The notes under the pieces: generated by a model
What the model was told of the DNA's origin: nothing
Database searches by the model: none
The model's input: only the letters and a program-made list of their open reading frames with translations
In this document: positions 9,433 through 26,103 of the stretch, piece after piece
Numbering within the stretch: the first letter of the stretch is position 1
Layout: each line of letters starts with the position of its first letter
Made by a program: the position numbers and the translations under genes
NCBI GenBank assembly: GCA_002269645.1
Contig: NIVC01005078.1
Location: 1 to 26,875 of the forward strand
Source of the DNA: Macrostomum lignano
Taxonomy: Eukaryota
Length of the DNA: 26,875 nucleotides
Direction of reading: 5' to 3'

Positions 9433-10216
9433 ATGAACTCCACACTGCATCTGCTCTTCATCGCATCTATGGTTCTTCTGTTATTCGCCGTTGGTAAGCT
9501 TCTGAAAAATAATTATCACCCAGTAACCAAATCTAAGCATTGCTACTAAGCCACTAAGCATTGCCAATTATAGTCTATGGGACATTGATCGGTTTATACT
9601 CGTACGTCGTGTACTTTATTTATTCTTAGTAGACAACGTGTACTGCTGTGCATGGTTTAGGAGGATTGAGCCCTGAGGAGCTGAAGAGAGCTGGGGAAAG
9701 AGAGAAACTGATTGATTCTCAGTGTTGGCTGGCTTTTTATCACTTTGCTTGGCTGTCGCAGTCTATGGCCCATAGACTGAGGCAAGATATCCAAGGCCCT
9801 TAATTATAACCCTAGCCCCAACCTAACCCTAACCCTAACCCTAAGCCCTAACCCTAACCCTAACCCTAACCCTAGCCCTAGCCCTAATCCTAGCCCTAGG
9901 CCTAACCCCAAAACTAACCCTAACCCTAGACCTAACCCTCTAGCCCTAGCCCTAGCCCTAACCCTAACCCTAACCCTAACCCTAACCCTAACCCTAACCC
10001 TAACCCTAACCCTAACCCTAACCTTTAGTTTCAGGCACGACCGAAGGCAGCTGCAAGCAGCGGTTGCACCTGTGTCTGGCCAGCTCGAACGGCTCATTTG
10101 ACGAGTGCTGCCAGGGGTTGAAGTGCTTCGCCCCGGATGTCATCAAGTCGCGGGACGATGATCACATTTTTGCTGGCTGGTGCATCCGAAACAGTTCGAG
10201 ATTCGAGTGGGATTGA
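9433..10216 (+). CDS. Secreted inhibitor-cystine-knot (knottin, conotoxin framework VI/VII-like) peptide, 80 aa, join(9433..9493,10035..10216)
   Basis: Exon 1 MNSTLHLLFIASMVLLLFAV ends G|GTAAGC (phase 1); acceptor TTTCAG|GC at 10034; spliced CDS is 243 nt, in frame. Product MNSTLHLLFIASMVLLLFAVGTTEGSCKQRLHLCLASSNGSFDECCQGLKCFAPDVIKSRDDDHIFAGWCIRNSSRFEWD with C-x6-C-x10-CC-x4-C-x18-C. ATTAAA at 10315-10320. Confidence 0.88.
9808..10026 (-). repeat. Interstitial telomeric array (TAACCC)n on + (TTAGGG on -) inside the knottin intron
   Basis: Degenerate CCCTAG/CCCTAA units, then about 11 perfect TAACCC copies at ~9957-10023. Confidence 0.95.
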
Positions 10217-10734: not shown

Positions 10735-13700
10735 TCAAATTTTCCCATGCAGCCAGTAAGTCTTCATCTTTTTCTCCTAAAAGTGAAGAAATATTGGTTT
10801 AATAGGTTATTTATTCTCAATAAAAACCATAGACAAATGAAGCATAATTAGAAATCCCAGTCAACTGAATCCCAGTTAGGGAATCCAAGTCAGGGGAATC
10901 CCAATCAGGAGAATCCCAGTCAAGGCAATCCCAGTCAGGGCAATCCCAGTCAGGGGAATCCCAATCGGTGGAATCCCAGTCGGTGGAATCCCAGTCAGTT
11001 AAATCCCCGTCAGGGCAATTCTAGTCAGGGAAATCCCAGTCGGTGGAAACCCAGTCAGGGGAATCCCAGTCAGGGGAATCCCAGTCAGGGGAATCCCAAT
11101 CAGGAGAATCCCAGTCAAGGCAATCCTAGTCAGTTAAATCCCCGTCAGGGCAGTTCTAGTCAGGGAAATCCCAGTCGGTGGAAACCCAGTCAGGGGAATC
11201 CCAGTCAGGGGAATCCCAGTCAGGGGAATCCCAATCAGGAGAATCCCAGTCAAGGCAATCCTAGTCAGGGGAATCCCAGTCAGTGGAATCCCAGTCAATG
11301 GGATTCCAGTCAGAGGAATCCCAGTCGGTGGAATCCCAGTCGGTGGAATCCCAGTCGGTGGAATCCCAGTCGGTGGAATCCCAGTCAGTTAAATCCCCGT
11401 CAGGGCAATTCTAGTCAGGGAAATCCCAGTCGGTGGAATCCCAATCGGGGAATCCTTATCAGGGGAATCCCAGTCAGTGGAAATCAACCAGATGATCTGG
11501 AATCCCAGTCAGGTTAATCCCAGTCAGGGAAATCCCAGTCAATGGAATCCCAGTAAGGGATTCCCAGTCAGGGAATCCTAGATTGCTCAATCTGCAATCT
11601 CAAAGTCCAGAGAGTAATAAGTTGTAAATTTAGTGCTAAAAACGGAAATTTAGTCCTTATCTCGCCGCTGCAATACGTTCGTAGGCACAGGAAATTTCTG
11701 AGAAACGTTGTCGAAAATCTGAATCATTTTTTCCTACCTGAACTTCGACTTCGCCGCGAAATTCCAGCTCAAACTGGTTGGTGATCTCCAACAGGGCGAA
11801 AGTTCGCTCGCTAATCTGGACTTTCGATGCTGAAAAAAAATTGTGAAAAAAACTCGTCTCATACTTATAGTAATACTAGAGCATTTTATTGCAATTTTTT
11901 TCCTACGCTGCCCGGTGGACTCCATGCAGTTGGCGATGTGCACCGTCTCGCCAAAAAGACAGTAGCGCGGCATCTTGGTGCCCACAATCCCGGCAACCAC
12001 GGCTCCTGAAAAATTAAATCAGCCAATATTAGCCAATAGCAGATGGTACTTTGAATCAAAATGATTTTTTCACCTGAGTGAATCCCAATGCGAATTTTCA
12101 CGCGGCCTTTTTCCAGGGCTCCGGTGGAAAATTCCATCATTGCGTCGCGAATGTCCAGCGCCACTGAGGCGATCTCCGCTGCGAAGGGAAAATTATCCCG
12201 AATAGATGAATACTATAGTGGCATATTGATTAATCAGCCTGCCTCTCCCTGCCTGCATCTCCCTGCCTGCCTCTCTCTGCCTGCATCTCCCTGCCTGCCT
12301 CTCCCTGCCTGCCTCTCCCTGCCTGCCTCTCCCTGCCTGCCTCTCCCTGTCTGCCTCTCCCTGCCTGCCTCTCCCTGTCTGCCTCTCCCTGCCTGCCTCT
12401 CCCTGCCTCTCCCTGCCTGCCTCTCCCTGCCTCTCCCTGCCTGCCTCTCCCTGCCTGCATCTCCCTGCCTGCCTCTCCCTGCCTGCCTCTCCCTGCCTCT
12501 CCCTGCCTGCCTCTCCCTGCCTGCCTCTCCCTGCCTGCCTCTCCCTGCCTGCCTCTCCCTGCCTGCCTCTCCCTGCCTGCCTCTCCCTGCCTGCCTCTCC
12601 CTGCCTGCCTCTCCCTGCCTGCCTCTCCCTGCCTGCCTCTCCCTGCCTGCCTCTCCCTGCCTGCCTCTCCCTGCCTGCCTCTCCCTGCCTGCCTCTCCCT
12701 GTCTGCCTCTCCCTGCCTGCCTCTCCCTGTCTGCCTCTCCCTGCCTGCCTCTCCCTGCCTCTCCCTGCCTGCCTCTCCCTGCCTCTCCCTGCCTGCCTCT
12801 CCCTGCCTGCCTCTCCCTGCCTGCCTCTCCCTGCCTGCCTCTCCCTGACTGCCTCTCCCTGCCTGCCTCTCCCTGCCTGCCTCTCCCTGCCTGCCTCTCC
12901 CTGCCTGCCTCTCCCTGCCTGCCTCTCCCTGCCTGCCTCTCCCTGCCTGCCTCTCCCTGCCTGCCTCTCCCTGCCTGCCTCTCCCTGCCTGCCTCTCCCT
13001 GCCTGCCTCTCCCTGCCTGCCTCTCCCTGCCTGCCTCTCCCTGCCTGCCTCTCCCTGCCTGCCTCTCCCTGCCTGCCTCTCCCTGCCTGCCTCTCCCTGC
13101 CTGCCTCTCCCTGCCTCTCCCTGCCTGCCTCTCCCTGCCTCTCCCTGCCTGCCTCTCCCTGCCTGCCTCTCCCTGCCTGCCTCTCCCTGCCTGCCTCTCC
13201 CTGCCTGCCTCTCCCTGCCTGCCTCTCCCTGCCTGCCTCTCCCTGCCTGCCTCTCCCTGCCTGCCTCTCCCTGCCTGCCTCTCCCTGCCTCTCCCTGCCT
13301 GCCTCTCCCTGCCTCTCCCTGCCTGCCTCTCCCTGCCTGCCTCTCCCTGCCTGCCTCTCCCTGCCTCTCCCTGCCTGCCTCTCCCTGCCTCTCCCTGCCT
13401 GCCTCTCCCTGCCTCTCCCTCCTGCCTCTCCCTGCCTGCCTCTCCCTGCCTCTCCCTGCCTGCCTCTCCCTGCCTGCCTCTCCCTGCCTCTCCCTGCCTG
13501 CCTCTCCCTGCCTGCCTCTCCCTGCCTGCCTCTCCCTGCCTGCCTCTCTGCCTGCATCTCCCTGCCTGCCTCTCCCTGCCTGCCTCTCCCTGCCTCTCCC
13601 TGCCTGCCTCTCCCTGCCTGCCTCTCCCTGCCTGCCTCTCCCTGCCTGCCTCTCCCTGCCTCTCCCTGCCTGCCTCTCCCTGCCTCTCCCTGCCTGCCTC

Positions 13701-16700
13701 TCCCTGCCTCTCCCTCCTGCCTCTCCCTGCCTGCCTCTCCCTGCCTCTCCCTGCCTGCCTCTCCCTGCCTGCCTCTCCCTGCCTCTCCCTGCCTGCATCT
13801 CCCTGCCTGCCTCTCTGCCTGCATCTCCCTATCTGCCTCTTCCAATGATACTAATCTTCTAGCAAATCTCGCAGTCCTTTATCCCATCGGGAGTCCCCCG
13901 GCAACTACACAGAGGCTCACAAGCGTGCATATCGCCATTCTTGATGGGCACTCCCGAGGCCACCATGTACGCATCGCCGATCGTCTCAACTTTGAAGGCG
14001 TCGTACATTTCAATTATGTTGTCGAATAGGCTGCGGATGGAGAAGTGGAAGCTCCATTATTTTTCTGTCTTCCTCTTTCTGTCTTTTTGAGGTCTTCCTC
14101 AAATTTCTGATGCTTAATTACCGAACCATAGAATCCCAAGGTCAAAATATACAATCCCGAGATCCTATCTTTAATCCCGAGATCCCATCTCCAATCCCCA
14201 AATAACATCCACAATCCCGAGATCCCATCTCCAATCCCTACATCCCATCTACAATCCTGAGATTCCATCTACAATCCTGAGATCTCATTTCCAATCCCAA
14301 GATCCCATCTCCAATCCCAAGATCTCATCTCCAATCCTGAGATCCCCTCTCCAATACTGAGATCCTATCTCCAATATCGAGATCCCATCTCCAATACTGA
14401 GATCCCATCTCCAATCCCTACATCCCATCTTCAACCCTTTGATCCCATCTCCAATCCCTAAATCACGTCTTCAATCCTGAGATTCCATCTCCAACCCTGA
14501 GATCTTATCTCTTATCCTGAGATCCCATCTCAAATCCCTACATCCCATCTACAGTCTTGAGATCCCATCTACAATCCCGAGATCCCATCTCCAATTCTTT
14601 GATCCCATCCCCGATCCCAAGATCCCATCTCCAATCCTGAGATCCTATCTCCAATTCCGAGATCCCATCTCTCCAATCCGAGATCCCATCTTCAATCTCG
14701 AGATCCCATCTCCAATCCCGAGATCCCGAATCCCAAGCGAGATCTCATACAAGGCTTACGAGTAGAGACTATTGAGCAGGTCGATAACCTCCATCGGTGA
14801 GATGCTTGACGAGATCACAGTGAAGCTGACGATGTCGCTGAAGTAGATGCTGACGCACTGGAACGTCTCAGGTTCCACCGTGAGGCCCTTGGTTAGCTGG
14901 TCGGCCACCGTCCGAGGCAGCATCTGGAACAGCAGCGTCTCTGTGCGCTTCTTCTCGACCTGTAGGGACGTGGGAGTCAGTTTGGCTCATTTAGCTTAAT
15001 AAACTCTTTGAATTCATTTTCCTGGCTGCTATTGTGTGTACCATTGAAGTTCTGACCTGCAAGTTTGGAGTTCGGATCTCGGGATTGGAGGTGGGATCTC
15101 GGGACTGAAGATGAGATCTCAAGGTTGGAGATGTGAACTCGGGATTGGAGATGGGATCTCGGATTGGAGAGATGGGATCTCGGAATTGGAGATGGGATCT
15201 CGGATTGGAGAGATGGGATCTCGGAATTGGAGATGGAATCTCGAGATTGGAGATGGGATCTCGGGATTGGAGGTGGGGTTTAGGGCTTGGAGCTGGGATC
15301 TCGGGATTGAAGATGAGATCTCAAGGTTGGAGATGTGAACTCGGGATTAGAGATGGGATCTCGGGACTGGAGATGGGATCTCGGATTGGAGAGATGGGAT
15401 CTCGGGACTGGAGATGGGATCCCGAGATTGGAGATGGGATCTCGGATTGGAGAGATGGGATCTCGGAATTGGAGATGGGATCTCGGGATTGGAGATAGGA
15501 TCTCAGGGTTGGAGATGGAATCTCGAGATTGGAGATGGGATCTCGGGATTGGAGATAGGATCTCAGGGTTGGAGATGGAATCTCGAGATTGGAGATGGGA
15601 TCTCGGGATTGGAGATAGGATCTAAGGACTGGAGTTCGGATCTCGGGACTGGAGATGGGATCTCGGGATTGGAGATGGGATCTCGGATTGAAGAGATAGG
15701 ATCTAAGGACTGGAGTTCGGATCTCGGGACTGGAGATGGGATCTCGGGATTGGAGATAGGATCTCAGGGTTGGAGATGGAATCTCGAGATTGGAGATGGG
15801 ATCTCGGATTGAAGAGATAGGATCTAAGGACTGGAGTTCGGATCTCGGGACTGGAGATGGGATCTCGGGATTGGAGATGGGATCTCAGGGTTGGAGATGG
15901 AATCTCGAGATTGGAGATGGGATCTCGGGATTGGAGATAGGATCTCAGGGTTGGAGATGGAATCTCGAGATTGGAGATGGGATCTCGGATTGAAGAGATA
16001 GGATCTAAGGACTGGAGTTCGGATCTCGGGACTGGAGATGGGATCTCGGGATTAAAGATGTGAACTGGGGATTGAATATGGGATCTCGGAATTGGATATG
16101 TAAACTGAGGATTGGAGATGAGATCTCAGGATTGGAGATGGGATATCGGATTAGAGATGGGATATTGGATTAGAGATGGGATCTCAGGAATGGAGATGGG
16201 ATGTCAGGATTGGAGATGGGATATCGGATTAGAGATGGGATCATAGGATTGGAGATAGAATCTCGAGATCGGAGATGGGATCTCGGGATTGGATCTGGGA
16301 TCATCAGAAAGTTTTGAATTCCAATGAAAAAGTAGTTACGTGGATAAACTAGCTATTAATGCTTGAGATTCCATGTTTTCGGTATATAGGATGAGGGCTT
16401 TCATCTAGGAATCAGGGTTGGATTATGGAAAATTCGATCACCGCAATCACATCCTGATTACATTAAAAGTGGCAGGAGCCATCTCTCACCTGCAACGCTT
16501 TAATTTTCTTTCGCAGTTTTACGGCATAGGTGAGAATCATCTGGCCCATGGCTCTGATGGTGGAGGCGTACCACACGGTGAGGCTGACACACAGAATCGT
16601 CACGATGATGAACAGAGTGGAGAACACGATTAAGTTCATTCTGGCCTCGTTAACAGAAGCTTTGAGCTGACTAACTATCGAGTCCGAGACGGAGTTCCGC

Positions 16701-19700
16701 ACCTGCGGATTGTGTGCATAGTGGGTCTTCTAATTAAGCAACTTCTAATTCTCTAGGGATTAAACGTGTGCTTGGAATTTGAATTTATTTAATCAATAAG
16801 CTTAGTTGCATTTCAATTAACTCAAAGCCTTAATTAAACGGATCAGCTCAACGAGCATCGTTCGTCTTCTTTGAAAGTAGAAATGCATCTCCTGCTGAGG
16901 CTTTTTTCCTGTAATTATTTTCTAGATTAAGATTCCTTATTAGAACAGGCGCGACCGACATCTAATTAGGCCAGAAGTGCAGCTAGAGATTTTTATTGAG
17001 GGGTAGTTAGGACCGCCTCTTTGAGGGCGCCATTTACTTTGAGGGGTGGCGCTATTTCATATTAGAATTGGCGCCATTTCATTTGAGATGTGGCGCCATT
17101 TCATTTGAGATGTGGCGCTATTTCATATTAGAATTGGCGCCATTTCATTTGAGATGTGGCGCCATTTCATTTGAGAGGTGGCGCTATTTCATATTAGAAT
17201 TGGTGCCATTTCATTTGAGATGTGGCGCCATTTCATTTGAGATGTGGCGCCATTTCATTTGAGATGTGGCGCCATTTCATTTGAGATGTGGCGCCATTTC
17301 ATTTGAGATGTGGCGCCATTTCATTTGAGATGTGGCGCTATTTCATTTGAGATGTGGCGCCATTTCATTTGAGATGTGGCGCCATTTCATTTGAGATGTG
17401 GCGCCATTTCATTTGAGATGTGGCACAATTTCATTCAAATCTCAAGCGACTCACCTGAACGAAGAGATTTATGAGCACAGTGGTATTGTCAAACCAGCCC
17501 TGAGCCAGCACGCTTCGGAATTGCTGCTCCTGTGTGTTGCAATAATCGATGAAGCTGCTGTTCAGCATCATTGCCCGTTTCAATGTTAAATTGCTGTCTA
17601 AATTGGCGGTGTTCATGTAAACCGTCTCGAACTCGCTGATGCAAGAGGCGCAATAGCCCCTGCCAATGTCGTACTCAGTTAGTTGAGTTCCGTAGAGGCG
17701 CAGAAAGTACTGCGGGTGAATTGAGGGTTGCTTCAGTACTATTCAAGATTCTTGTTTATCGTGTGAATTTAATTATTGTAATTATATTTATTTCCGAATG
17801 TAACATCCCGTTGTGGGGTAGGAAGATTCCGATTGTACATCCCGTTGTGGGGTAGAAAGATTTATTTCCGAATGCACATCCCGTTGTGGGGTAGAAGATT
17901 CCGATTGTACATCCCGTTGTGGGGTAGGAAGATTCCGATTTTACATCCCGTTGTGGTTAGGAAGATTCCAAATGTACATCCCGTTGTGGGGTAGGAAGAT
18001 TCCGATTGTACGTCCCGTTGTGGGGTAGGAAGATTCCGATTGTACATCCCGTTGTGGGGTAGGAAGATTCCAAATGTACATCCTGTTTTGGGGTAGAAAG
18101 ATTTCGTTCCGAATGTACATCCCGTTGTGGGGTAGAAAGATTTCTTTCTGAATGTACATCCCGTTGTGGGGTAGGAAGATTTCTTTCCGAATGTACATCC
18201 CGTTGTGGGTAGGAAGATTTATTTCCGAATGTACATCCCGTTGTGGGGTAGGAAGATTCTGAAGGTACATCCCGTTGTGGGGTAGGAAGATTCTGAAGGT
18301 ACATCCCGTTGTGGGGTAGGAAGATTCTGATTGTACATCCCGTTGTGGGGTAGGAAGATTCCGATTGTACATCCCGTTGTGGGGTAGGAAGATTCCGAAT
18401 GTACATCTCGTTGTGGGGTAGAAAGATTTTTTCCGAATGTACATCCCGTTGTGGGGTAGGAAGATTTCTTTCCGAATGTACATATCCCGTTGTGGGGTAG
18501 GAAGATTCCGAATGTACATCCCGTTGTGGGGATAAATAAATAATTAAATAATTAAATTGTGACTGTACAGTCTCGTAAACGTTTTAAATAAATGAGTTCG
18601 GCTACCGCATGCCGGCCTATCAAAACCCACCCTGAAAAGTTCGGGCGGCAGGTGGCAGTTGATGAACCAAGACGAGCCCAGGGCTCGCTGCAGTCCGATA
18701 GCCTCGGTGACTCGCAGAATGGCTGAAAAGGCCAGCATTTGAGTCCAGAGCTTGCTGCCCGGAGGGAAAATGGCGGTGCTGTCGCCCCAGTCCATCAGCA
18801 TGTTGATGAAGGGAGTGTAAAAGTCCGGCGAGTCAATTGTTTGCATTTCGTGAGCACTGAAACGAGGAAGGTTTAATAGTTTTCTTTGCGAAAAAGGACG
18901 TCATAAAAAACTTACATCTCTAAGAATTAATTCCCTAATAATTATCTCACTTGTGTTTTTGCGGTCATAGAAACTCACGCCGATGGATGATGGTCTCAGA
19001 ATCACAGAATCTCACCCCCAGTGATGATGATCTCAGCATCTTACAATCTCACCCCAAGTGGTGATGGTCTCAGAATCTCACCCCAAATGATGATGGTCTC
19101 ACAATCTCGTCCCAAGTGATAATGGTCTCACAATCTCACAATCTCACCCCAAGTGATGATGGTCTCACAATCTCACCCCAAGTGATGATGGTCTCAAAAT
19201 CTCACCCCAAGTGATGATGGTCTCAGTATCTCACAATCTCACCCCAAGTGATGTGATCTCAGAATCTCACCCAAAATGATGGTCTCACAATCTCGCCCCA
19301 AGTGATGATGATCTCACAATCTCACCCCAAGTGATGATGGTCTCACAATCTCGTCCCAAGTGATAATGGTCTCACAATCTCGTCCCAAGTGATAATGGTC
19401 TCACAATGTCACAATCTCACCCCAAGGGATGATGGTCTCACAATCTCACCCCAAGTGATGATGGTCTCACAATCTCACCCCAAGGGATGATGGTCTCACA
19501 ATCTCACCCCAAGTGGTGATGGTCCCATAATCTCACCCCAAGTGATGATGGTCTCACAATCTCACCCCAAGTGATGATGGTCTCACAATCTCGTCCCAAG
19601 TGATAATGGTCTCAAAATCTCACAATCTCACCCCAAGTGATGATGGTCTCACAATCTCATCCCAAGTGGTGATGGTCCCACAATCTCACCCCAAGTGATG

Positions 19701-21287
19701 ATGGTCTCACAATCTCACCCCAAGTGATGATGGTCTCACAATCTCGTCCCAAGTGATAATGGTCTCAAAATCTCGTCCCAAGTGATAATGGTCTCAAAAT
19801 CTCACAATCTCACCCCAAGTGATAATGGTCTCACAATCTCACCCCAAGTGATGTGGTCTCACAATCTCGTCCCAAGTGATAATGGTCTCAAAATCTCACA
19901 ATCTCACCCCAAGTGATAGTGGTCTCACAATGTCACCCCAAGTGATGTGGTCTCACAATCTCACCCCAAGTAATGATGATCTCAGCATGTCACAATCTCA
20001 CCCTGCATCAAGGAACTCACATGGTGTCGACTCGACGCCGGAACCAAGCCAGGTTGGCGGCCATGTCAGCTTTGGTGTAGAGCGGCCTGATGGGCACAGT
20101 ATAACCGCTGCTGGTGTTGCTATAGTAAAAGTACTCAATGGGAGGCCAGATGCTCATGCCCTCAAGAGCGGCATCCGAAATAACTCGTTGATTTTTGATC
20201 CGCTGATAAAAGACCATGTCGGTGCCGTTCGAGGCCAGGAAGGTTGCCGTCAGGCCGCGCTCGATCTGCAGGCTGCCGACCAGTTTGCTCATGTCCATGT
20301 TGCCTGAGAAGTGGAGTGAGCATTTTGAGAATTGAGAATATTAAGAATTAGAAGGCTGCGCGGTATCGGGCAAAGAATGAAATGGCGCTCCCTATTGAAT
20401 GACGCTTTGAATTAATCACCCTTCATGACGACTGCACGTATGAACATTTGAAGTACAAGGATGCGGACGCCTAATCGGAATTTTCTCGAGTGAATTTTTG
20501 TTTATGGCAAAACCCCATGCGTTCCCTGTCACTCTCCCGCCTGGGTCCTGCTTGGATTCAACCGCAAGGGCATCAGGGCGGTAGCCGCGATGATGGTCTC
20601 AGGTCAATGGCATCGCCCATTCTGCCTCTCCGGTGTTGAGCGCTTCATCTGTGAATGCCCTGCTTTCAATCCGGATCTCTTTTCCGGCTAGCTACCTAAG
20701 GCCTACCGGACGAGTAACCAACCGCCTCTTCGCCTCTCTTGGACTCTCCGGCAGTCCTGGATCTCCCTGCCCGACACCGCAGCTGCCCGTGGTTGTCAGG
20801 GGTCAGTCGAATGGGCGGTGACGCCTCCCCGCTGCACCCGGATGCCCGGAGCATCCCCTGCAAAAAAGTCAAGTAAGTCCTTCGCGAAGAAAGACGACTT
20901 GATCGGATCTCTGAGTATTACAGATAAATTTAGTCGATAAGATTGCCAGCAGATCTCAAACTCACCTGTCAGTGACACCTGAGCCCGCTGACTCTGCGAG
21001 AACGTGCTCGATGCCCTCGTCAAACCGACAGTGCCAATGGACAGAGCCGCTATCACCGGAATGCTGATCACTGCCAGCATTTTGGCCACCTCAAGCGCCT
21101 GTCTGCAGGCCGTCTGGGTGTCCAGAATCACCTGGATGCGGCCCTTTGTGTCCGAGTTAGCGCTGGATACCATTGACGTGCTCGAGCGTGCGACCAAGGC
21201 TGGGGCTATGCCGTTTGCAACGGAAGCTGCGCTGCTGCTCCGCATGTCGAGGACGCTGGCGCGCCCGTTGGAATATGAGTAGGACAT
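10735..21287 (-). CDS. NIT-domain transmembrane guanylate cyclase (NIT-GC family), 648 aa, complement(join(10735..10776,11738..11829,11907..12005,12074..12178,13921..14030,14760..14959,16490..16702,17455..17709,18631..18856,20021..20303,20966..21287))
   Basis: All 10 introns are GT-AG with consistent phases (1,2,0,0,0,2,1,1,1,0); total 1947 nt = 648 aa + stop. TM1 ([20 protein letters not shown]), NIT motifs [41 protein letters not shown]; TM2 ([22 protein letters not shown]); helical linker [21 protein letters not shown]; cyclase motifs [54 protein letters not shown] on the minus strand at 10566-10571. Confidence 0.92.
10852..11580. repeat. ~15-bp minisatellite (GAATCCCAGTCAGGG) in cyclase intron 10
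   Basis: Tandem AATCCCAGTC-cored units with recurring ~70-bp higher-order blocks. Confidence 0.93.
12234..13842. repeat. 14-bp/10-bp satellite (CCTGCCTGCCTCTC / CCTGCCTCTC) in cyclase intron 7
   Basis: 1.6 kb nearly pure array; explains the 522-586 aa artefactual ORFs. Confidence 0.98.
14152..14748. repeat. 20-bp minisatellite (GAGATCCCATCTCCAATCCC) in cyclase intron 6
   Basis: Tandem degenerate copies; reverse complement of the intron 5 array. Confidence 0.95.
15066..16302. repeat. 20-bp minisatellite (GGGATTGGAGATGGGATCTC) in cyclase intron 5
   Basis: Period 20 is clear at e.g. 15901-15960; reverse complement of the intron 6 array. Confidence 0.96.
17026..17440. repeat. 22-bp minisatellite (TGTGGCGCCATTTCATTTGAGA) in cyclase intron 4
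   Basis: Exact period 22 (17221, 17243 ...). Confidence 0.95.
17789..18531. repeat. 34-bp minisatellite (GATTCCGATTGTACATCCCGTTGTGGGGTAGGAA) in cyclase intron 3
   Basis: Period 34 (18001, 18035) with longer variants. Confidence 0.95.
18974..20003. repeat. 29-bp minisatellite (CTCACCCCAAGTGATGATGGTCTCACAAT) in cyclase intron 2
   Basis: Period 29 (19561, 19590) with ATCTCACA insertion variants. Confidence 0.95.
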
Positions 21288-22532: not shown

Positions 22533-23162
22533 TCACTTAATGATGTTATAAAACCGGATGGCATGGGTGCTGTCTGAAGGCAGTGCGCTACCATCTGCTG
22601 CTGCACCCTTCTTCGCATCTTTGGCGTCCTTCTTGGCGTCTTTTGCGTCCTTTGCGTCCTTCTTAACGTCCTTTGCGTCTTTCTTCGCGTCTTTTGCGTC
22701 CTTCTTAACGTCCTTTGCGTCTTTCTTCGCGTCCTTTGCGTCCTTTTTAACGTCCTTTGCATCCTTTTTAACGTCCTTAGCGTCCTTCTTGGCGTCTTTT
22801 GCGTCCTTAACATCCTTTGCGTCCTTCTTGGCGTCCTTCTTTGCGTCCTTTGCGTCCTTTGCGTCCTTCTTAGCGTCCTTTGCGTCCTTCTTAGCGTCCT
22901 TTGCGTCCTTCTTAGCGTCCTTAGCGTCCTTTTTGGCGTCCTTGACGTCTTTCTTAGCGTCCTTTTTGGAATCCTTGGCATCCTTTTTAGCATCCTTTTT
23001 GGCATCTTTCTTTGCGTCTTTTGCGTCCTTTTTAGCGTCTTTTTTCGCGTCTTTAACGTCCTTCGCGCCCTTAGCAGCTTTGGTACTCATGCCGGTGCCT
23101 TCTCCGCTGCATCGGCTTACTGAGCAGTTGAAGAGTTGCTTTAACTTGGCTTCCGCTTCCTG
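22533..23162 (-). CDS. Terminal coding exon of a Lys/Asp/Ala-rich repeat protein (cylicin-like KKD/DAK repeats); 5' exons unresolved
   Basis: Frame is open from a TAG|CAG tandem acceptor at 23163 (QEAEAKLKQLFNCSVSRCSGEGTGMSTK...) to TGA at 22533. Repeat copies differ mainly at synonymous positions (GAC/GAT, GCA/GCC/GCG/GCT, AAA/AAG), unlike the non-coding satellites. Confidence 0.75.
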   Translation of the reverse strand, partial: QEAEAKLKQLFNCSVSRCSGEGTGMSTKAAKGAKDVKDAKKDAKKDAKDAKKDAKKDAKKDAKDSKKDAKKDVKDAKKDAKDAKKDAKDAKKDAKDAKKDAKDAKDAKKDAKKDAKDVKDAKDAKKDAKDVKKDAKDVKKDAKDAKKDAKDVKKDAKDAKKDAKDVKKDAKDAKDAKKDAKDAKKGAAADGSALPSDSTHAIRFYNIIK

Positions 23163-24490: not shown

Positions 24491-26103
24491 CTTGAAGTAT
24501 TTCGATCTGTCTGAAGCATCCGTCCTGAAGTATTTCAATCTATCTGAAGCATCGATCCTGAAGTATTTCAATCTATCTGAAGCATGCATCCTGAAGTATT
24601 CTATCTATCTGAAGCATCCATCCTGAAGTATTCTATCTATCTGGAGCATCGATCCTGAAGTATTTCAATCTATCTGAAGCATCGATCCTGAAGTATTTCA
24701 ATCTATCTGAAGCATCGATCCTGAAGTATTTCAATCTATCTGAAGCATCGATCCTCAAGTAATTCAATCTATCTGAAGCATCGATCCTGAAGTATTTCAA
24801 TCTATCTGAAGCATCGATCCTGAAGTATTTCAATCTATCTGAAGCATCCATCCTGAAGTATTCTATCTATCTAAGCATCGATCCTGAAGTAGTTCAATCT
24901 ATCTGAAGCATCGATCCTGAAGTATTCAATCTATCTGAAGCATCGATCCTGAAGTATTTCAATCTATCTGAAGCATCGATCCTGAAGTATTTCAATCTAT
25001 CTGAAGCATCGATCCTGAAGTATTCCAATCTATCTGAAGCATCGATCCTGAAGTATTTCAATCTATCTGAAGCATCGATCCTGAAGTATTTCAATCTATC
25101 TGAAGCATCGATCCTGAAGTATTCAATCTATCTGAAGCATCGATCCTGAAGTATTCCAATCTATCTGAAGCATCGATCCTGAAGTATTTCAATCTATCTG
25201 AAGCATCGATCCTGAAGTATTCAATCTATCTGAAGCATCGATCCTGAAGTATTTCAATCTATCTGAAGCATGCATCCTGAAGTATTTCGATCTATCTAAA
25301 GCATCGATCCTGAAGTATTTCGATCTATCTGAAGCATCGATCCTGAAGTATTTCAATCTATCTGAAGCATCGATCCTGAAGTAGTTCAATCTATCTGAAG
25401 CATCGATCCTGAAGTATTTCAATCTATCTGAAGCATCGATCCTGAAGTATTTCAATCTATCTGGAGCATCGATCCTGAAGTATTTCAATCTATTTGAAGC
25501 ATCGATCCTGAAGTATTTCAATCTATCTGAGCATCGATCCTGAAGTATTTCAATCTATCTGAAGCATCGATCCTGAAGTATTTCAATCTATCTGAAGCAT
25601 CGATCCTGAAGTATTTCAATCTATCTGAAGCATCGATCCTGAAGTATTTCAATCTATCTGAAGCATCGATCCTGAAGTATTTCAATCTATCTGAAGCATC
25701 CATCCTGAAGTATTTCAATCTATCTGAAGCATCGATCCTGAAGTATTTCAATCTATCTGAAGCATCGATCCTGAAGTATTTCAATCTATCTGAAGCATCG
25801 ATCCTGAAGTATTTCAATCTATCTGAAGCATCGATCCTGAAGTATTTCAATCTATCTGAAGCATCGATCCTGAAGTATTTCAATCTATCTGAAGCATCCA
25901 TCCTGAAGTATTTCAATCTATCTGAAGCATCGATCCTGAAGTATTTCAATCTATCTGAAGCATCGATCCTGAAGTATTTCAATCTATCTGAAGCATCGAT
26001 CCTGAAGTATTTCAATCTATCTGAAGCATCGATCCTGAAGTATTTCAATCTATCTGAAGCATCGATCCTGAAGTATTTCAATTATCTGAAGCAATCCTGA
26101 AGA
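24491..26103. repeat. 33-bp satellite (TCAATCTATCTGAAGCATCGATCCTGAAGTATT), ~49 copies
   Basis: Highly homogeneous; the unit is a dimer of CTGAAG-led subunits; explains the KYFRIDASDRL ORFs. Confidence 0.98.

Follow-up and report, generated by a model that had tools for sequence, protein, structure and literature searches.

A NIT-domain receptor guanylate cyclase of the flatworm Macrostomum lignano with the residue pattern of an alpha-like half-site

Gene structure and domain organization

We examined a 26,875-bp stretch of the genome of the flatworm Macrostomum lignano (positions 1 to 26,875, the full length of contig NIVC01005078.1, assembly GCA_002269645.1; hereafter the window) and identified in it a gene for a NIT-domain guanylate cyclase (NIT-GC) whose catalytic domain keeps the metal-binding half of the class III cyclase active site and has lost three residues of the other half. 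The gene lies on the minus strand at 10735..21287, with the ATG at 21287-21285 and the stop codon at 10737-10735. According to a splice model in which every boundary was checked, it consists of 11 exons and codes for a product of 648 residues. All 10 introns are of the GT-AG type, and the reading frame is continuous, with neither stops nor frameshifts. When 181 homologs were compared with the window by tblastn, the matches were confined to these exons, all on the minus strand.

Exons 1–5 occupy positions 21287-20966, 20303-20021, 18856-18631, 17709-17455 and 16702-16490, respectively. Exon 6 (14959-14760) contains the end of the signaling helix and the start of the cyclase domain, including the first metal Asp, D475. 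Exon 7 (14030-13921) codes for KVETIGDAY, which holds E515 and D519, and exon 8 (12178-12074) for IRIGIH, which holds R566. The following exon 9 (12005-11907) carries RYCLFG (C587) and, after it, H594 and C598, whereas Q635 is the last codon of exon 10 (11829-11738) and the C-terminal end and stop codon are found in exon 11 (10776-10735). A first-pass annotation of this DNA had described a cyclase at 10735-14959, a span that coincides exactly with exons 6–11 and thus with the cyclase domain; the motifs, the His and Cys codons, the VQEKK stretch and the 11 intact exons that it listed are all present where it placed them.

From the N-terminus, the product contains a first transmembrane-like segment (aa 71-89, 21021..21077, minus strand; Kyte-Doolittle 19-residue mean 2.25), a NIT sensor domain encoded by exons 2–5 (aa 114-371, 16676..20286, minus strand; Pfam PF08376, E 1.8e-23), a second transmembrane-like segment (aa 387-405, 16574..16630, minus strand; Kyte-Doolittle mean 2.66), a signaling helix matched by the tail of the HNOBA family, and a C-terminal class III cyclase domain (Guanylate_cyc, PF00211, aa 462-646). 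The latter match covered model positions 2-183 of 183, with an E-value of 6.1e-61 and a score of 205.6 bits (cut-off 21.9). No Pkinase match, that is, no kinase-homology domain, was found by Pfam in the 648-residue product. This order of domains is the one described for NIT-GCs. Both arginine motifs of the NIT domain are present, as LQIERG (aa 119) and GLQRALG (aa 256), and read LQRERG and GIQRALG in homologs; the two arginines form a putative ligand-binding site (Moroz et al. 2020, PMC7400543).

Active-site residues

For the catalytic domain, we used the scheme of eight active-site positions of Allerston et al. 2013 (PMC3591389) and placed the residues by alignment with human GC-A, which is gap-free through the catalytic core. 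In soluble guanylate cyclase (sGC), D486, D530 and R574 are contributed by the alpha subunit and E473, C541, N548, R552 and K593 by the beta subunit; the counterparts of the beta set in the adenylyl cyclase AC2 are K938, D1018, N1025, R1029 and K1065 (PMC3591389). We matched the C-terminus of rat AC2 to chain 1AB8_A, using an offset that reproduces D1018, N1025 and R1029, and found that K1065 is the first Lys of the KGKG motif. The first-pass annotation had assigned the Asn, Arg and Lys to sGC beta and C2, and the Asp pair to sGC alpha, in agreement with the published scheme and the AC2 numbering.

In the window protein, both metal Asp residues are kept, at position 1 (D475 in FSDIV, codon 14836-14834; this and all other codons are on the minus strand) and at position 3 (D519 in KVETIGDAY, codon 13975-13973). 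Also kept are the guanine Glu at position 2 (E515 in the same motif, codon 13987-13985), the phosphate Arg of alpha/C1 type at position 4 (R566 in IRIGIH, codon 12092-12090) and the guanine Cys at position 5 (C587 in RYCLFG, codon 11961-11959). The other three positions are lost: the ribose Asn at position 6 is replaced by H594 (codon CAC, 11940-11938), the transition-state Arg at position 7 by C598 (codon TGC, 11928-11926), and the triphosphate Lys at position 8, the first Lys of KGKG, by Q635 (codon 11740-11738). The second Lys of this motif is kept as K637, and the stretch reads VQEKK. The resulting signature, DEDRC-HCQ, retains all three alpha-type positions and two of the five beta-type positions; the metal half is kept and the Asn/Arg/Lys half is gone.

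Judged by these residues, the protein is not a pure copy of an alpha subunit, the Glu and Cys being part of the beta/C2 set in sGC. Their presence corresponds to guanylate-type base specificity, for which adenylyl cyclases have Lys and Asp instead. The six best full-length homologs (32-38% identity) are NIT-GCs of a bivalve, a brachiopod, an annelid, echinoderms and a tardigrade, and all six of them keep both GDTVNTASRMES and KGKG. A self-sufficient homodimeric site is not expected from a sequence with H594, C598 and Q635. Adenylyl cyclase mutants that have lost just the Asn or just the Arg at the corresponding position show a kcat reduced by one to two orders of magnitude.

A second genomic copy and purifying selection

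A duplicate of the region, collinear with the window, lies on contig NIVC01002232.1 (loci L002 and L003); the intergenic stretch is 98% identical between the two. In this copy of the gene, exons 1–6 and 8–11 are present and their splice sites are unchanged. Exon 7 was found in neither of the two fetched loci and probably sits in the 544-bp gap between them. The codons for H594, C598 and Q635 and the VQEKK stretch are identical in the two copies, as is the coding sequence of exon 11.

We compared the window gene with this second copy using Nei-Gojobori estimates of non-synonymous (dN) and synonymous (dS) divergence and a binomial test against neutrality. All comparable codons contained 24 synonymous and 7 non-synonymous differences (dS 0.059, dN 0.0050, dN/dS 0.085, P = 3e-10). 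In the cyclase exons 6 and 8–11, there were 8 synonymous differences and a single non-synonymous one (dS 0.068, dN 0.0025, dN/dS 0.036, P = 6e-5). Whether the two contigs represent recent duplicates or haplotypes, purifying selection on the degenerate cyclase domain is strong. Because the second copy keeps the His, Cys and Gln and dN/dS is low, the gene is not decaying; recent decay would, according to the first-pass annotation, have shown itself in orthologs that retain Asn, Arg and Lys and in a dN/dS near 1, far above both values obtained here.

Alpha-like and beta-like classes in the NIT-GC family

A profile built from the six best homologs was searched against 1.84 billion representatives, and the best 150 matches were taken as a sample of the family. 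The 95 sequences with both NIT and cyclase domains, comprising 94 database proteins and the window protein, formed the census set. We designated as alpha-like those proteins in which the Asp, Asp and Arg are kept and at least one of the Glu, Cys, Asn, Arg and Lys is lost, and as beta-like those in which at least one of the Asp, Asp and Arg is lost and all five other positions are kept. With these definitions, 59 of the 95 sequences were canonical, 15 (the window protein counted) were alpha-like and 10 were beta-like; 4 had losses on both sides and 7 were incomplete. A protein search with the NIT half alone returned no matches.

Alpha-like proteins came from nemerteans (Lineus, Tubulanus), hemichordates (Saccoglossus, Glandiceps), a sea urchin, a brachiopod, bivalves, a priapulid and crustaceans, and beta-like proteins from nemerteans, the annelid Owenia, mollusks and a tardigrade. 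Both classes co-occur in Lineus longissimus and Tubulanus polymorphus. A class of NIT-GCs complementary to the window protein, as anticipated in the first-pass annotation, is thus present in the family. A hydrophobic residue after the Asn position is common to many of the alpha-like proteins (xTVxIAxKMES).

Among the 17 sequences with at least two beta-type losses, alpha-type positions were lost in 4 of 50 cases and beta-type positions in 44 of 84 (Fisher P = 8e-8). As the beta-like class demonstrates, the fold survives replacement of the first Asp. Because alpha-like proteins keep this Asp even though the fold tolerates its loss, they appear to be still feeding a catalytic site.

Several candidate paralogs or partners were rejected on inspection. 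P0026, a NIT-GC fragment considered as an M. lignano paralog, belongs to GCA_022702875.1 and GCA_022702835.1. Two Owenia proteins, P0083 and P0123, considered as an adjacent pair, are encoded near each other but are non-adjacent, and P0123 is degenerate on both sides. The tardigrade proteins P0067 and P0108 are encoded in tandem, 1.2 kb apart, in Paramacrobiotus metropolitanus (BHEN01000144.1; L007 3763-15811). They were considered as an adjacent alpha/beta pair, but the DNA shows that both are without the first Asp: the upstream P0067 lacks the whole beta-strand that carries it, and also the Asn and Arg, and the downstream P0108 has Val in its place and keeps the Asn, Arg and Lys.

Relationships and origin of the alpha-like state

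Trees were constructed by neighbor-joining with 100 bootstraps and are rough distance trees rather than likelihood analyses; Kimura distances were saturated and so unusable for this purpose. The nearest relative of the window protein in the sample is P0046 of Lineus longissimus (XP_064641408.1; 36% identity over 635 aa), which is itself alpha-like. It keeps the D, E, D, R and C, as the window protein does, and has lost both the Asn and the Arg (GTTVLIAGYMEN). It differs in having Leu and Tyr at the lost positions, where the window protein has His and Cys, and in keeping the first Lys of KGKG. The two proteins pair with a bootstrap of 85% in the full-length tree and 51% in the tree of the NIT and transmembrane part alone. 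If they are orthologs, the loss would predate the flatworm-nemertean split and these two positions would have drifted since. The P0046 locus showed no conserved synteny with the neighbors of the window gene.

In the NIT-only tree, alpha-like proteins are found in several groups: one of these is lophotrochozoan (Tubulanus, Mytilus, Lingula) and is supported at 88-97%, and deuterostome alpha-like proteins form separate groups. Because the alpha-like proteins are not one clade in this tree, the alpha-like state seems to have arisen several times. A single alpha-like clade, seen in the first neighbor-joining tree of the cyclase domain only, is unsupported by the NIT-only tree and is probably due to long-branch or convergent attraction. 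The first-pass annotation had proposed that an alpha/beta division of labor evolved independently in this protein; the alpha-like state is real, but it is not special to the window gene and recurs in several lineages, including that of P0046.

Proposed mechanism and alternative explanations

The metal half is kept, and H594, C598 and Q635 occur in the second copy too, which bears out the description of the protein as a true half-site cyclase of alpha/C1 type. On the basis of its residues, we propose, with a probability of roughly 55%, that it is a functional NIT receptor guanylate cyclase that acts as an alpha/C1-type half-site subunit and probably needs a partner cyclase to make cyclic GMP (cGMP). 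Class III sites form at the dimer interface from complementary residues of two chains. The two metal Asp residues and the Arg come from one chain; the ribose Asn, the transition-state Arg, the triphosphate Lys and the two residues that recognize the base come from the other. The window protein could supply D475, D519 and R566 but not the Asn, Arg or Lys. A homodimer would then have two crippled sites in which the metal residues are present. In sGC and membrane adenylyl cyclase, one site is competent and the other is a dead pseudo-site, and pairing of the window protein with a NIT-GC that keeps the Asn, Arg and Lys would have the same result; canonical and beta-like NIT-GCs would be equally suitable partners. 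The NIT domain looks ligand-competent, so that the heteromer would gain a second sensor input. What we infer in this proposal is the partner, the formation of a heterodimer and the consequence for catalysis. Precedents for obligate heteromers in the superfamily are sGC (PMC3591389) and ODR-1/DAF-11 (PMC5225109).

Several observations weigh against this proposal. Platynereis NIT-GC1, the only NIT-GC that has been assayed biochemically, made cGMP when expressed alone (bioRxiv 10.1101/2023.08.02.551600). Two-sided losses were observed in 4 sequences, compared with about 3 expected under independence, and so are not rarer than chance would give. FSD, IGDAY and RIGIH are also core motifs of the fold and may owe some of their conservation to structure. 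The adjacent tardigrade pair is not complementary: a complete metal site could not come from either of its chains. The tblastn comparison with the 181 homologs revealed no second cyclase gene that might encode a partner in the window, and no cyclase gene was found within 10 kb of the Lineus P0046 gene. Finally, the NIT-GC is absent from the called genes in the parts examined of both NIVC01005078.1 and NIVC01002232.1; with an intact and constrained gene at hand, this looks like an annotation gap.

With three of eight active-site positions lost, the protein could instead be a non-catalytic pseudoenzyme, that is, a sensor, scaffold or dominant-negative subunit that, in a dimer with an active cyclase or in a homodimer, reduces or localizes cGMP production and takes no part in any active site. 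We consider this somewhat unlikely. Purifying selection suits any protein-level function, catalytic or other, and non-catalytic derivatives of NIT-GCs seem to exist, considering the two-sided losses in P0088, P0123 and P0117 and the missing first-Asp strand of P0067. Even the pairing proposed above would, with a fully canonical partner, replace two good sites by one, which amounts to a partial dominant-negative effect. However, the metal Asp pair, the Arg and the Glu/Cys pair are all kept both in the window protein and in its nearest relative, and the family-wide retention of Asp/Asp/Arg where Asn/Arg/Lys are lost (4/50 versus 44/84 lost) is not something that a role independent of the site would require.

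Another explanation is a weakly or unconventionally active homodimer, in which His594 partly stands in for the Asn and other basic residues for the Arg and Lys, and a low basal rate has been selected. His, like Asn, can donate or accept a hydrogen bond, K637 is kept, every substrate-binding and metal residue that a single chain must provide is present, and the activity of Platynereis NIT-GC1 alone is in line with such an enzyme. Nevertheless, the Asn, Arg and Lys are all changed, the replacement of Arg by Cys removes a charge, and P0046 has Leu and Tyr at two of the positions, so that no replacement chemistry is conserved; we regard this explanation as improbable. A pseudogene, recent decay or an assembly or sequencing artifact, which might be suspected from the missing gene calls and from introns full of hard-to-assemble minisatellites, is effectively excluded by the intact frame, the canonical splice sites throughout, the identity of the critical codons on an independent contig and a dN/dS of 0.085 that rejects neutrality (P = 3e-10).

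Repeats and neighboring genes

Several of the longer introns of the NIT-GC gene are largely filled by minisatellite arrays. The largest array, in intron 7 (12237-13840), contains about 120 copies of the 14-mer GCCTGCCTCTCCCT in a 1.6-kb stretch with 64-68% GC content and a strong strand skew. Further arrays were identified at 10853-11578, 17792-18531, 19008-19984 and 24493-26093, and array lengths differ between the two genomic copies. The introns that flank exon 6 (14147-14733 and 15065-16302) contain the same 20-mer minisatellite in opposite orientation, forming inverted arms of up to 287 nt with 84% complementarity. This inverted arrangement is also visible in the second copy (L002 1-270 and 600-1400). 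Such inverted intronic repeats could favor skipping or back-splicing of exon 6; this exon is 200 nt long, and its skipping would shift the frame. Approximately 0.7 kb downstream of the NIT-GC stop codon, the intergenic region contains an interstitial array (9807-10023) in which TAACCC, complementary to the telomere repeat TTAGGG, occurs about 36 times.

The downstream neighbor of the NIT-GC gene, on the same minus strand, codes for an endosulfine/ARPP19 protein (PF04667, 2627-3061), which is 100% identical over the aligned part to an M. lignano UniRef entry. The first exon of a tetraspanin gene (PF00335, 26244-26570, plus strand) is divergent from the NIT-GC gene and 99% identical to M. lignano BOX15_Mlig019955g1. 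Between the two lies an open reading frame (ORF) for 185 residues on the minus strand (22533-23090) that consists almost entirely of KDAKKDAK-type repeats and has no Pfam match; at its place in the duplicate, a 126-residue gene has been called (L002 7574-8317), and the repeat number differs between the copies. The other ORFs of the window that were tried had no Pfam match either.

The endosulfine gene, the NIT-GC gene, the Lys/Asp/Ala-repeat ORF and the tetraspanin gene are all repeated at about 98% identity on the 191-kb contig NIVC01002232.1, which fits a recent large-scale duplication or haplotypes retained in the assembly. A third copy of the endosulfine gene is present on the 865-kb contig NIVC01000150.1 (L004), with no NIT-GC found within 10 kb of this region. 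Upstream of the NIT-GC start in the duplicate contig, a tRNA-like stretch (ggccgtagcccagcggtagcgg...ggctcgattcc) occurs at about L002 6840-6910, and no tRNA genes were detected in the window; the stretch may be a tRNA-derived short interspersed element (SINE) present in one copy only.

Implications

NIT-GCs were recognized in 2020 (PMC7400543), and one of them mediates nitric oxide (NO) signaling in an annelid photoreceptor circuit (bioRxiv 10.1101/2023.08.02.551600). Animals often have a dozen or more NIT-GC paralogs without known function. If approximately one quarter of NIT-GCs are half-site subunits, as in our sample, single-gene expression assays and knock-downs would be misleading. The main value of the present case is a testable prediction at the level of the family, that many NIT-GC paralogs are subunits rather than stand-alone enzymes. 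If this is true, the signaling unit may be a heterodimer that merges two different NIT sensors into one catalytic output, and the family would provide another independent transition from homodimer to heterodimer, beside those of sGC, membrane adenylyl cyclase and ODR-1/DAF-11, with many natural replicates.

Flatworms, including M. lignano, have been reported to lack nitric oxide synthase (NOS) (PMC10728431), and with a conserved NIT-GC in such a phylum, one may ask which ligand its NIT domain senses. That such a flatworm keeps a constrained NIT-GC with intact ligand-site arginines suggests a ligand source other than endogenous NOS. More tentatively, and at less than even odds, NIT-GCs may have split repeatedly across bilaterians into alpha and beta subunits that work only as heterodimers, each with two sensors and one active site. 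The window gene would then be a spiralian alpha subunit, older than the flatworm-nemertean split, and the signal that it reports would be nitrogen oxides from the environment or from microbes, not endogenous NO.

Comparison with known systems

The NIT-GCs described to date (Moroz et al. 2020, PMC7400543; Jokura et al., bioRxiv 10.1101/2023.08.02.551600) have the same architecture as the window protein. The cyclase domain of Platynereis NIT-GC1 was called highly conserved by its authors, whereas the window protein lacks the Asn, Arg and Lys. Flatworms are not named as NIT-GC-bearing taxa in either of these two papers, and we found no mention of degenerate or heteromeric NIT-GCs, or of flatworm NIT-GCs, in the searchable literature.

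With regard to the catalytic residues, the closest parallel is found in sGC alpha and the C1 domain of adenylyl cyclase, which, like the window protein, have the two metal Asp residues and the Arg and are without the ribose Asn and the transition-state Arg (PMC3591389). The proteins differ in other respects: the window protein is a membrane NIT receptor with a Glu/Cys guanine pair, whereas sGC alpha is a haem-free soluble subunit with H-NOX and PAS domains. In sGC alpha1, the stretch at the ribose Asn and transition-state Arg positions reads GNNVTLANKFES. Because the window protein falls in the receptor-GC/NIT-GC branch, its resemblance to sGC alpha and C1 is, on this placement, best described as convergent.

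A further parallel comes from Caenorhabditis elegans, in which the membrane guanylyl cyclases ODR-1 and DAF-11 are described as an obligate heterodimer, each monomer giving essential residues for a single site (PMC5225109). In contrast to the window protein, these nematode receptor cyclases combine a kinase-homology domain with an ANF-type ectodomain, lack a NIT domain and belong to a different lineage; the parallel drawn here follows their published description. The statement in the first-pass annotation that membrane guanylate cyclases are normally homodimers is accordingly qualified by a heterodimeric precedent among them (PMC5225109). The NIT-GC itself is thus of a known kind, and a half-site membrane guanylate cyclase already has a precedent in nematodes.

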